A stretch of DNA of 64,000 bases from positions 2,108,001 through 2,172,000 of the forward strand of contig JBBPEB010000015.1 in the NCBI GenBank assembly GCA_039096225.1. Reading direction: 5' to 3'. The position numbers and the translations under genes are program-made. A model generated the notes under the pieces. It was given only the letters and a program-made list of their open reading frames with translations. It had not been told where the DNA came from and did no database searches. The stretch comes from Blastocystis sp. Blastoise (lineage: Eukaryota; Protista; Bigyra: Opalinata). Shown piece after piece: positions 33,063 through 62,918 of this stretch (position 1 is the first letter of the stretch; each line of letters begins with the position of its first letter).

Positions 33063-35006
33063 ATGACTGATAAAGTCTGAAAAGACTGAATATCTAGTTT
33101 ACAAATATTTAGAATTAAGATAATTTAATATATAGAAGGAGATTCAACTATTAGGTAATTTTAAAGTGTTCTAGATATCATATAGTTATAATATATAACA
33201 TAAGTTACAAGAAATAATATATAGTTAAATTGATGGAAGATAAATTGACTGAAAGTGAAGATTATTTATTTACCGAGAGCAAATATGCATCAAGGTTGGA
33301 ATACATTAGACAGCAGCTAATGGATTTATATGAATGCAGATATTATATATATGAATTATCACAGATAGGTAAAAAAAAATATTTCTTTTAATTAATATAT
33401 ATATATATGAATAGTTCGTGATGAGAGTAAAGTATATTATTTCAATGTGATAGGTCGAATATGTACATCGTATAATGATAGTCAGTATCAGGTTCAAGTG
33501 ACTATATTGATATCATCTATTGAGTATCCAGAGAAGCCTCCAAAGATATTGATAATGAATAATGAGAATGTAGTTTTGAAGAAGAATTGTCGATATATAA
33601 GAGAGAATGGTGAGATACAAACACCTTTACTTATGAATTGGAAATCTGATATATTATTTTCTGAGATAATAGAAGATATTGAGCAATGTTTTTCAAAAGA
33701 TTTTCCTATTTTAAGAGCGTATATAATTAATAATAATAATAATAATAATAATAATAATAATAAATATATATAGAACACCAGCAGGTATATAATAGAATAG
33801 AGATGAATACTATTTGTTATATAAATATAATAAATAGTATTATATATATATATATATATAGCAATAAATATTTTACCTTGTTCTGATATTAAGATTGATA
33901 AAAAGAAAGGAGAAGGATCTTTTGCAATTGTTTATAAAGCGTATATAATAATTATTTATAATAATAATAAATATAATAATAAATATAATAATAAATATAA
34001 TAATAAATATAATAATAATAATAATAATAAATATAAATATAGTTATTGGAATAATGATAAGATAGCTTTAAAGGTATTGAAAGATAAGATATATGAAGAG
34101 AATTTATCTGAGAATAGTCAGAAAGAGCAGATTCGTCAGTTTTTGACTCGTATTAATCGTGAAGTGACAATTATGTGTACATTGAGTCATCCTAATATAG
34201 TGAAATGTTATGGTTTAACGAATTGGAATAGACAAATTGCTTTATTATTAGAATATTTACCTTATAATTTACGATCTTTATTAGATGATATTAATTATAA
34301 GATGACTCCAAGAGTTCAAAAGTTGATTTTATATTCTGTAGCTCATGGTTTATCTCATATGCATTCTTTTGAACATCCTATTATTCATAGAGATCTTAAA
34401 GTATATATATATATATTATTATTATTATAAATATTATTAATTATAGGCTGATAATATATTATTAAATAAAGAATATGAAGTAAAAATAGGTGATTTTGGA
34501 TTTGCACGTGAATTATCTGATGAACGTCTTTCTTTAGTTGGAACAAAAACAACGTAAATAATATATAATATAATAGTTTATAATAGTTTATAATAGTTTA
34601 TAATAGTTTATAATAGTTTATAATAGTTTATAATAGTTTATAATATAATATAATATAATATAATAGAATGGCTCCTGAAATCTTACGATGTGTTCGTAAT
34701 TATGATGAGAAAGTAGATGTATATAGTTATGGTTGTGTAATATTTGAAGTAATGACAAGACTTAATATGATAGAATCCTATCCTAAAGATATTCCTGCTG
34801 AAAGGTTTCTCTTTGAAATAGCTAGTGGTACAAAACGACCTTTTTTACCTTCATCAATTCCTTTAGAAGTTCAAGAATTAATACAATTATGTTGGAAACA
34901 AGATCCTAAAGAACGACCTTCAATGTATGATATTGAAAGACAAATAAATTCTTGGGATATAACAAATTGGCCTGTAATTCTTTCACCAAAGAATAATCAT
35001 ACTTAA
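33063..35006 (+). CDS. UEV (TSG101/Vps23-like) domain fused to a TKL-type protein kinase, copy A (full length, 9 exons)
   Basis: UEV: GRICTSYNDSQYQVQVTILISSIEYPEKPPKILI..ENGEIQTPLLMNW..FSKDFPI. Kinase: GEGSFAIVYKA, IALKVL, HPNIV, HRDLK|ADN, DFG, GTKTTMAPE, DVYSYG, LCWKQDPKERP. Confidence 0.88.
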
Positions 35007-38000
35007 TATTTATAATCTTCTTTTCAATAAACATTATTCTTTTTTTTAAATATTATATAATTAGTCATTATTATTATTTTCATTTATATTATTCATGTTT
35101 TTAATTTAATTATATATATATTTAATAATAAAAAACAAAACAACAAAAAATAAAATATATTCTTACTAACAACTAGAAGAAATATTATATTTATTAATAA
35201 ATTTATTAATAAATGAAATTATCAAGAAGAGAGAGAAAATTAAAATTAACTATATTATCTATTAAAAATTATATATATATATATATATATATATATTTAT
35301 ATATAAAAGAGAGAGAAAAAAAATAAAAATAGAGAGAGAAAAAATAAATAAATAAAAAAAAATCTAATCTATAAATTAATAGTACAAGAAAGATCATATA
35401 GTATAGATTTAAATAAATTTAAAAAAATAAATAAATAAATATATATTTTATCTTCTGAAAGCTGGTGGAGGTGGAGGAGGAGCTCTTTTTCCTGCCATAG
35501 GAGCCATAGAAGGTGGAGGTGGAGGAGGAGCTTTACGAGTCATAAATGAACTATTAGGTTTTGAATATGTAGGTGGAGGTGGAGGAGGAGCCATATATTG
35601 AGATGGTTTTCTAGATGTAGGAGGAGGAGGAGGAGGAATAGAAGAAGAAATAGTAGAATTAGGAGTATAAGAAGCACGAGTTAATTGACCATTAGTATTA
35701 GCAGATGGAGGACTATATATATATTTATTATTATATTATAAATTATATTATAAATAAAAATAAAATAAAATAAAAAAAAATAAATATATAAAATAAAATA
35801 AAATAAATATATAATAATAAAATAAAAAATAAAACATACACTGAATAATTATTATTATTTCTTGATTTTGAAGATCTATTACAAATACATTTAAATAACC
35901 ATATAATTAATCCAAGAACTAATATACATAATATACCAATACATATATAAACAATAATCATCCAATTAAAAGGATAAACTTCACCTAATTTAACATCATA
36001 TGTTTTATCTATAGAATCAAAACTATAAGTAACACCATTAAAATCTTTTTCAAAACTACTAAATGAAAATGTATTTGGTACTTTTTCAGCAACAATTCTA
36101 TATCGTATATCTCCCATATTATAATGATCTGTTAATTCATTTTGATTTGGAAGATTATTACCTTGTCTACTTACATAAACAGGTCGTACATTTTCTAAAG
36201 CCATAGCATTACTAAATGAAATTGCATTTAATATACCATTAGGAGAACCAAGATTATGAAGATATGTATAAGTATAACGAAATGATATATTACATAATCC
36301 TTCAAATCTACCTAAATAAACACTTATTATACCTATATCTGTATCTAAATACATTGTTGTATCTTTAGGTATACATTCATGTATATCAATATAAAACCAA
36401 TCACCAAAAGCCATTCTTGATACAGGAGTAACAATCCATTCATTTGCTTGAACTTCTTTATATCGAATAAAAGAAGTAGGTACAGTATAATAAGATTCAG
36501 GTATAGATGCAGGACCAATTTGTACTATAGAATCAGTCATATAATAAATAGCAAGTCTTGTTGTACTTTTCATATTACGAAGTATTATTGGTTTACTACT
36601 TATATATTTATTATCTTTTTCTACAGTTACATAACATTCACTTGCACCTGTTAATAATAAATCAGGAAGCATTGTTACTAAACGACTATCTTGAGGAATA
36701 TCAATTCGATTACCATATAAATCCATTATATATATAGATGTACTTTCACCTTCATATGGCATATTATCTAATAATAATATATTTCCTTTTCCTACTTCTA
36801 TATATTTATCATCAGATTCAGAAATACCTCGTTTATATAATGTACCTGATAACCAATAATTTACACGATAATCAGGACTATTAGAATAACTTATATCAAC
36901 ACGTACTTTAAATTTTGTTATATCTCCTAAACCATGATACCAATTCATTAAATCATTACCATTTAATGATAATATAGAACTTGAACTACTTGCAAATGCA
37001 TATCCATTATTTATATAATAAACACGAGGATGACCACGACTTCCTTGAGGAACTATATAAGCCCAAAATAATTTAGTACCCATTATTTTACAATCATAAC
37101 CTGATAAATCAAATTTTACTTTACAATCATATAGATTTGAAGACCATTTATATTCAGGAGCACCAGTAGGTATAGGAACAGATACATAAGGAATACCAGG
37201 ATTTAATGTAATATCAAATTCTACATAAGGTACTTCAGATAAGGCATGAACACTTGTATCATTTGTTTGTTCCATTGCAAATGTTAAAGTATTTAAATGA
37301 AATTTTGTTATATGAATAGCTAAAAATCCATTATCAATTTCAGGAGGAATATAATAAATACCAAAAGGAATACTACTATCAGACCAATTATCTATATTAT
37401 CTGTTTGAGTATCTAATAGAATAGATACACCAGGTAAACCACCATCTTCAAAACGATAATTTAAAGCACGAAGACCTTTCTTTCCAAATCCTTTCTGATC
37501 TCCTTGTTGTCTATATTCTAAAGTAAATGAACTATATTTATAATCAGCATTTACAGTAGAACACATATCTTCACGAGTATAAGGAATCTCTATAATCATA
37601 ATATTATTCTTATAAGGAATACCATCAATTATTTCATCATCATTTAAACGAGGAGCTTCTGTACCTAAGAAATGTCTTGAATAAGGATGATCCCACATAA
37701 ACATTCTATATTTAGTAGTACCTCGTTCAGGTACTCCTAACCAATGTTGTTCTACTTTCTTCTCACTCATACAACGATAATAATGATAAGGACCAGGAAT
37801 AGTATACCAACTACCAGCTGTACCCATTACATTAGCACCATCACCATAATTATTTGGCCAATTAAAACTAGGTAAGAAATATGTAGGATTACTATCAACA
37901 AAACTTGCATGATTATAACCCATATTATGACCAAATTCATGAATAAGAACACCACCATTATAATCATATTTCCACTGAACATCGGGGTCGTTAGGATATC

Positions 38001-62267: not shown

Positions 62268-62918
62268 CTATTCATATATATATATTAATTCAAAGAATTG
62301 AATTTTTTATGTTATAACTACAAATCCAGGCTACAATTCATAAAATAAATGAAAATAAAGTTCAGTACAATTTTTAAAATGAGATTTTTTTGTTGTTTTT
62401 CTGGATAACTTATGAAATTATAATAATATAATATAATAAAATACATATTTGCATTTTCTTCATTGCCCTATTTGTTAATATCACATACATATAACACTAC
62501 CATAAATAAGAGTAAGATCAAAACATATGCATGTTGTTTACATATAATGTAGAACCATTTTTAGAACATAACTGTCAATATTCTTTAGAAAATAATAATG
62601 ATAATGTTTTCAATCACATATGTTACAAACTAAAACTACTAAAGATGAACGACACTTTTACTATTTTTTCTAATCACTCCGTATTGTTTTCTTTCCATAT
62701 CCGTGTTTACTTTTCAATTATATATATTGAATACACATGATTAATTAAAAAAATTCTTTAAAAACACAACTAACTCCACGTTAAGTATAAAAATGAAAAT
62801 AAACTGATAGATTCTGCGATTCCCTTGGTTATATCTAGAACTTCTTAATAAAGCATGATATATCTGTTCATTCCCTCTTTGATTGTCTTTATTTATTTTG
62901 CGTTCTGTTGTGGATTTA

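Follow-up and report, generated by a model that had tools for sequence, protein, structure and literature searches.

Short-intron differences between inverted copies of a UEV-kinase gene in Blastocystis sp. Blastoise and their probable origin by intron loss

Precise intron loss by the reverse transcriptase (RT) model is established (PMC3652778), as is a preference for short introns in intron loss (PMC3698931). Intron polymorphism and recombination-driven internal loss are described in Cryptococcus (PMC2395259) and in other fungi, and many presence/absence differences can also build up over a short time through Introner- or transposon-driven gain (PMC9860276). Whether introns are lost through recombination with cDNA, through RNA-templated repair or through deletion of DNA has been debated for decades, mostly on old events with altered flanks. 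Here we discuss a locus in a 64,000-nt stretch of the Blastocystis sp. Blastoise genome (contig JBBPEB010000015.1, positions 2,108,001 to 2,172,000; hereafter the window), where two near-identical, inverted copies of a kinase gene differ by the presence or absence of five short introns. The locus is known here from the genome assembly and from RNA contigs. The strain, Rus-B ("Blastoise"), comes from a Russian tortoise (Lind et al. 2025, PMC12129017), and its genome (G000) has 33.34 Mb in 34 contigs at ~24% GC. Intron loss between paralogues is unmentioned in the Rus-B genome paper (PMC12129017) and in the ST1 paper.

Judged from the assembly, the five differences are very probably real differences in the DNA. 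We favor, with moderate confidence, the explanation that short spliceosomal introns were precisely lost after the duplication, by an RNA- or cDNA-templated process acting at an unusually high rate.

Introns of the two UEV-kinase copies

A repeat search and a MAFFT alignment of 33000-39200(+) against 56300-62700(-) identify 33397-38742 and 62285-56787 as an inverted duplication, the arms being separated by an 18-kb spacer at 38743-56786. The kinase gene in each arm encodes a fusion of a UEV domain with a TKL-type kinase (Pfam PF05743, PF00069/PF07714). The arms, the gene copies and the five variable introns are as follows.

33397..38742, plus strand: arm A, with UEV-kinase copy A and an opposite-strand 989-aa Reprolysin-like open reading frame (ORF)
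56787..62285, minus strand: arm B, with UEV-kinase copy B and the second 989-aa Reprolysin-like ORF
33136..35005, plus strand: UEV-kinase copy A; end of the coding sequence firm, start approximate (5' exons outside the repeat)
60547..62463, minus strand: UEV-kinase copy B; own first exon with ATG at 62463, without copy A's 5' exons
62068..62114, minus strand: intron i1, 47 nt, phase 1, copy B only; copy A junction between 33567 and 33568; unpolarized
61951..61987, minus strand: intron i2, 37 nt, phase 0, copy B only; copy A junction between 33647 and 33648; unpolarized
34401..34446, plus strand: intron i6, 46 nt, phase 0 (HRDLK/ADN), copy A only; copy B junction between 61194 and 61193
60792..60832, minus strand: intron i8, 41 nt, phase 0, copy B only; copy A junction between 34804 and 34805
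60686..60730, minus strand: intron i9, 45 nt, phase 1, copy B only, flanked by a TTTAG repeat; copy A junction at about 34866 and 34867

All five variable introns start with GTATAT, end in AG and keep the reading frame. Removal of all introns, variable and shared, gives a single open frame in each copy, and the two proteins are identical across the duplicated part. An initial annotation, made from the letters of the window, had noted the five differences, and the MAFFT alignment confirmed their coordinates to the base. Its further description, of four exact differences and a 41-nt site where the adjoining codon reads AGA or AGG, was also borne out. Four of the five excisions are exact, and that of i8 is exact but for one synonymous junction base: the last exon base is G in copy A (AGG, 34802-34804) and A in copy B (AGA). 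The aligner sets the i8 insert one base over, at 60833-60793. As had been noted, one further exonic difference (GTT/GTA) separates the copies, which gives 1-2 changes in 1,198 aligned exon bases, and a flanking direct repeat is found at one variable intron only (i9). The GTATAT start, to which attention had also been drawn, is indeed common to the five, but it is not distinctive, since the shared introns i3-i5 begin likewise.

The introns are supported by RNA. Two RNA contig sets (runs X1 and X2) contain the locus. The X1 contig, of 1,404 nt, skips every predicted intron, and X2 is likewise fully spliced, which indicates that all ten introns are real and are spliced. The X1 contig has 252 nt between two anchors, equal to 11+79+11+71+80 nt of exon; this spacing fits only if an 11-nt exon is counted in, which supports a micro-exon between i3 and i4. 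The same contig bears the copy A base at 34316, the AGG junction and copy A's private 5' exon, so copy A is expressed; X2 also has the A form at 34316. No B-type contig was seen among the RNA contigs, a result that is uninformative on copy B expression because contigs drop rare variants.

The remaining introns, the micro-exon and the divergence between the copies are listed below.

33369..33414, plus strand: intron i0 (copy A), 46 nt; spliced in RNA, retained in the assembly; in part upstream of the arm
33719..33773, plus strand: shared intron i3, 55 nt in copy A; 49 nt in copy B (61831-61879)
33774..33784, plus strand, and 61820-61830, minus strand: micro-exon of 11 nt between i3 and i4, from the length of the spliced RNA contig
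33785..33861, plus strand: shared intron i4, 77 nt in copy A; 73 nt in copy B (61747-61819)
33941..34042, plus strand: shared intron i5, 102 nt in copy A; 116 nt in copy B (61552-61667); position common to the orthologue
34554..34666, plus strand: shared intron i7, 113 nt in copy A; 115 nt in copy B (60972-61086); position common to the orthologue
34316, plus strand: the only unambiguous exonic substitution, GTT in copy A and GTA in copy B (61278)
Kinase exons: 1-2 differences in 1,198 aligned bases (34316 and the AGG/AGA base at the i8 junction)
Shared introns: 16 differences in 337 aligned bases, and six small indels
3' untranslated region (UTR) and intergenic DNA: 12 differences in 737 aligned bases

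The copies thus also differ by many small indels and single-base changes in the shared introns and the 3' UTR. Intron i7 consists of tandem repeats of a 10-nt unit, with the unit variants ordered differently in the two copies, and this rearrangement accounts for 12 of the 16 apparent substitutions in shared introns. The only short intron present in both kinase copies is i3. At the 5' end, the arm A breakpoint (33397) falls within i0. Copy B begins there with a private 19-nt coding exon (62445-62463, minus strand; MKKMQI) that replaces copy A's 5' exons, leaving its UEV domain truncated at the N terminus. The public protein P0004 (NCBI WA158_001465, Blastocystis sp. Blastoise, 405 aa) is exactly the spliced copy B product.

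Polarity of the differences and intron length

Polarity was obtained from an orthologue. A protein search with the fused exon of copy B led to a 96-aa ORF (P0080) that runs from the kinase exon into HRDLK/V, and from there to a low-coverage metagenome contig of 959 nt (L049; ENA ERZ13405063, NODE_153228) encoding the orthologous kinase. The contig has ~40% GC and introns of 30-35 nt, as in mammalian and bird Blastocystis. It is the reciprocal best match of the UEV-kinase, at 57% identity versus 35% for the next paralogue, and is 52.6% identical to it across 251 aa. Its five introns lie at the same codon and in the same phase as i5, i6, i7, i8 and i9, and the exons between them measure 358/107/136/61 nt in L049 and 358/107/139/61 nt in Blastoise. 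The L049 intron at the i6 site has 30 nt. Because codon and phase coincide, i6, i8 and i9 are ancestral and their absences are losses: on this sequence comparison, i6 is lost from copy B, and i8 and i9 are lost from copy A. By analogy with these, i1 and i2 were probably lost from copy A.

Introns i1 and i2 fall within the UEV part of the gene, and attempts to polarize them gave no orthologue. A search with the UEV exon returned no match, a metagenome scan with P0004 returned only kinases at 36% identity or less, and a full-length protein search found no orthologue between 36% and 100% identity. Nor did a search for independent assemblies find contigs encoding P0004 or the 112-aa terminal ORF of copy A. 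The other kinase paralogues of the Blastoise genome were dropped from the comparison of intron positions, as they are at most 35% identical and too distant. The retained introns have changed in another way: i5 and i7 have 33-35 nt in L049 versus 102-116 nt in Blastoise, a growth of about threefold, whereas the later-lost introns grew only by 10-16 nt. The initial annotation had proposed fast intron turnover running in both directions, by cDNA-mediated loss or by de novo gain of TA-rich introns, and had named an orthologue as the means of telling these apart. Fast two-way turnover is supported, three of the five introns can be shown to have been lost, and de novo gain finds no support, the polarized introns being ancestral by comparison with L049.

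The variable introns are short. The duplicated part of the kinase gene has nine introns, and the five variable ones (37-47 nt) are all shorter than the other four (49-116 nt), as first remarked in the initial annotation, which had also recommended scanning other young paralogue pairs. Three pairs from the same genome were taken for comparison, and the pooled statistics combine the kinase pair with two of them, SDHA and Era, which likewise show intron presence/absence differences.

SDHA inverted pair (L045/L046): two adjacent variable introns of 55 and 45 nt; shared introns of 180 and 240 nt
Era inverted pair (L047/L048): variable introns of 37, 48, 44 and 39 nt (split three to one between the copies); shared introns of 57-254 nt
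Tandem AKR pair (L050, G000:C34:290500-295500), older: differences of 43 nt and 101 nt inside an identical tract

Pooled over the three young pairs, 11 variable introns have 37-55 nt and 10 shared introns have 55-254 nt. The chances that the variable introns are the shortest within each gene are 1/126 for the kinase and 1/70 and 1/6 for the others, with a product of ~2e-5. Of the 12 introns that do not exceed 55 nt, 11 are present in one copy of their pair and absent from the other. The approximate whole-window gene models (composition-weighted, and reproducing the RNA-supported kinase model) put introns of 55 nt or less at only ~14% of introns in single-copy genes. Such a low share would agree with the purging of short introns across the genome.

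Several features of these pairs deserve mention. Each of the kinase (C4), SDHA (C18) and Era (C14) pairs forms an inverted repeat with 13-40 kb of unique DNA between the arms. The 45-nt intron of SDHA copy a (L045, G000:C18:585000-589500, minus strand), in GNM/HADDW, starts with GTATGT and ends in TG instead of AG. It is in frame and free of stops, would add 15 residues at a conserved site if left unspliced, and is exactly absent from copy b. In the 100%-identical tract of the AKR pair, one copy has a 43-nt GA..AG insert (the T of the donor is missing) that is absent from the other, and a 101-nt GT..AG intron is found in the other copy only, so that in an older pair the variation can extend to a long intron. 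An aldo-keto-reductase pair on C22 was not used; it is an old pair of 60-70% identity.

Origin of the differences

The sequence properties of the variable introns were compared with those of the retained introns. The length of the junction repeat in the 11 variable introns is 0 in five, 1-2 in five and 5 in one, and the shared introns are similar; microhomology was rejected as the determinant, as it shows no enrichment over retained introns. Instability of hairpins or palindromes was rejected as well, the predicted energy of DNA hairpins per nucleotide being equal in variable and shared introns. Other non-coding DNA of the kinase arms, just as AT-rich, shows no indels of 25 nt or more over ~1,070 nt. 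No other copies of i1 are found in the genome, the only other match to i9 is an unrelated TA-rich junction, and target-site duplications are absent at the variable introns. The genome searches with i1 and i9 thus reject an Introner family for want of repeated copies, in agreement with the initial annotation, which had seen no conventional Introner sequence. Taken together, the lack of microhomology enrichment, the equal hairpins, the absence of other indels and the absence of mobile copies indicate that the deletions are set by splice sites.

The initial annotation had also advised looking for RTs in the genome. At least 20 RVT_1 domains are found there, within open frames of 2,400-2,800 aa. 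The RVT_1 frames (e.g., C23:75618-76424, C15:488522-489331 and C4:2419696-2420514) are stop-free, several of them in tandem pairs ~8.6 kb apart, and from their sequence they look like intact non-LTR retrotransposons.

These observations can be accommodated by the following model. The losses would have occurred after the duplication, or after the last homogenizing gene conversion, with i8 and i9, and probably i1 and i2, lost from copy A and i6 from copy B. The gene would have been recombined with, or repaired on, a spliced transcript, either as cDNA made by the RTs of the genome or with the RNA itself as the template. A spliced template of this kind would erase an intron exactly at its splice sites. 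The process would hit almost only introns of 55 nt or less and would be frequent across the genome. The variable introns include adjacent pairs, i1 and i2 on the 5' side and i8 and i9 at the 3' end, with the long i3-i5 and i7 between them retained. That adjacent pairs are lost together, the SDHA pair included, fits short conversion tracts.

A number of points weigh against this model. A simple RT model predicts neither the sharp length limit near 55 nt nor the near-complementary pattern in which, for 11 of 12 short introns, one copy has the intron and the other does not. A clear 3' bias is lacking, and long introns have stayed in place amid the lost ones, so that a single, fully spliced cDNA tract explains neither copy. 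The AGG/AGA difference at the i8 junction calls either for one more substitution or for a deletion in the DNA that was offset by 1 nt; the retained introns of SDHA (TG for AG) and AKR (GA for GT) are anomalies comparable to it. The polarity of i1 and i2 relies on analogy with the other introns, and the short reads used by POLCA are not stated explicitly in the genome paper (PMC12129017).

The last point bears on the possibility that the pattern arose in assembly or polishing, with both copies carrying all the introns and spliced short reads patchily deleting the short ones. The same project produced RNA-seq, and for the POLCA step the paper says no more than 'short-read polishing' (PMC12129017). 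The affected introns, all of 55 nt or less, are of a size that a gapped short-read alignment can bridge, and the intronless junction of copy A is identical to its mRNA. However, the published pipeline (Nanopore R9 DNA, Flye, racon four times, Polypolish three times with Illumina DNA, and POLCA once with short reads; PMC12129017) names Illumina DNA for polishing and RNA for annotation, and the same pipeline kept tens of thousands of nearly uniform 30-nt introns in human-strain assemblies. Within copy A, i0 (in unique sequence) and i6, both of 46 nt, are spliced in the same transcript and yet have stayed in the assembly. The approximate gene models of the window contain further introns of 35-55 nt, in line with the 35-42-nt introns that the initial annotation had pointed to. 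Copy-specific small differences in shared introns indicate that the arms were resolved separately, and an artifact appears quite unlikely. A real loss could instead proceed by deletion at the DNA level, through microhomology-mediated end joining, slippage or excision of TA-rich hairpins, with selection keeping the exact or silent outcomes. This would agree with the preferential loss of short introns in the microhomology model of van Schendel and Tijsterman (PMC3698931), with i8, which is a near-perfect palindrome and fits a silent 41-nt deletion shifted by 1 nt, and with the 5-nt repeat that flanks i9. We nevertheless consider it unlikely: five of 11 variable introns are without junction microhomology, in a distribution equal to that of retained introns; predicted hairpin stability is equal between the classes; the UTRs, intergenic DNA and long introns of the same repeats, far larger in amount and just as AT-rich, have no comparable deletions of 25-55 nt; and 10 or 11 of the 11 events are exact to the base.

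Gain deserves consideration for i1 and i2, which are unpolarized and could be de novo insertions of TA-rich DNA or of an Introner-like element in copy B. Such newcomers would be hard to tell from their neighbors, as all introns at the locus are TA-rich with a GTATAT start. All three polarizable variable introns are ancestral, though; i1 and i9 are without other genomic copies beyond a chance TA-rich junction, and without target-site duplications; and two gains 80 nt apart at <1% divergence would be unprecedented, which makes gain very improbable. A variant of the favored model can also be envisaged, in which partly spliced RNA served, once or a few times, to strip one copy of every short intron, and reciprocal exchange between the inverted arms then spread the intronless segments over both copies. 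It would account for the fact that 11 of 12 short introns are lacking in one copy of a pair but not in the other, and that each of the three testable ones has been kept in at least one copy, and it draws on the inverted arrangement of all three young pairs and on signs of ongoing exchange between the kinase arms, described below. On the other hand, independent loss at ~0.5 per copy is not rejected by the small numbers. The tandem AKR pair also differs reciprocally, although a reciprocal crossover there would delete the spacer, and the single-base differences carry no phase information. Exchange of this kind is improbable in our estimation.

The rate of loss by precise, RNA- or cDNA-templated removal depends on the age of the duplication, on which the neighboring ORFs give some information.

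35743..38712, minus strand: co-duplicated 989-aa Reprolysin-like ORF, intronless; partner at 56817-59786, plus strand
Divergence of the neighboring ORF: 0 differences in 2,085 nt of the 3' part, 38 in 885 nt of the 5' part, no indels

The step in divergence suggests either a gene-conversion boundary or diversifying selection, and it looks like the product of ongoing gene conversion between the arms, which means that the arms may be older than the identity of the kinase exons suggests. If exon identity does reflect age, about half of the short introns have been lost per copy while neutral sites diverged by ~1-4%, a rate far above usual intron-loss rates. This rate should be read as an upper bound, since gene conversion may make the arms look younger than they are. 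A broader and more speculative proposal, which we put forward only tentatively, is that the tortoise Blastocystis lineage has a length-gated (~55 nt or less), splice-site-defined erasure of introns that is 2-3 orders of magnitude faster per point substitution than in other eukaryotes and is purging the ancestral ~30-50-nt introns genome-wide. Such length-gated erasure may be coupled to exchange between inverted repeats. If true, the purge would partly explain the 'longer' introns of the clade and could be watched in culture.

Comparison with known routes of intron loss and gain

What the locus adds is an unusually clean case of precise intron loss, a process already established. The events are so recent that the flanking exons remain identical; there are several per gene, and they recur in other gene pairs of one culturable protist. 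They offer a clean data set on length dependence, microhomology and tract structure, and possibly a means to catch new losses experimentally. In practical terms, paralogue-specific intron content affects the gene models of Blastoise and may bias the reported difference in intron length between tortoise and human Blastocystis.

Introner- or transposon-driven gain (PMC9860276) has in common with this locus the many presence/absence differences over a short time. It differs in that the polarity in Blastoise is that of loss, with neither a repeated element family nor target-site duplications. Microhomology-mediated loss (PMC3698931) resembles it in the preferential and precise loss of the smaller introns, but junction microhomology is not enriched in Blastoise, being absent in five of 11 variable introns, and retained introns are the same in this respect. 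The likeness to RT- or RNA-templated loss is closer: in the kinase pair, introns are cut out precisely at their splice sites and the exons on either side are left whole, neighboring introns are lost together (i1 and i2, i8 and i9, and the adjacent SDHA pair), the gene is expressed, and RT genes are present in the genome. Unlike in that model, there is no clear 3' bias in Blastoise, long introns between lost ones are kept, a limit lies at ~55 nt, and the losses are very frequent relative to point substitutions and reciprocal between two young paralogues. As in Cryptococcus (PMC2395259) and other fungi, the differences are recent and precise, concern internal introns and are seen between very close sequences. 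The comparison in Blastoise, however, is between paralogues within the genome of one stramenopile gut protist, with several losses per gene at <1% exon divergence.

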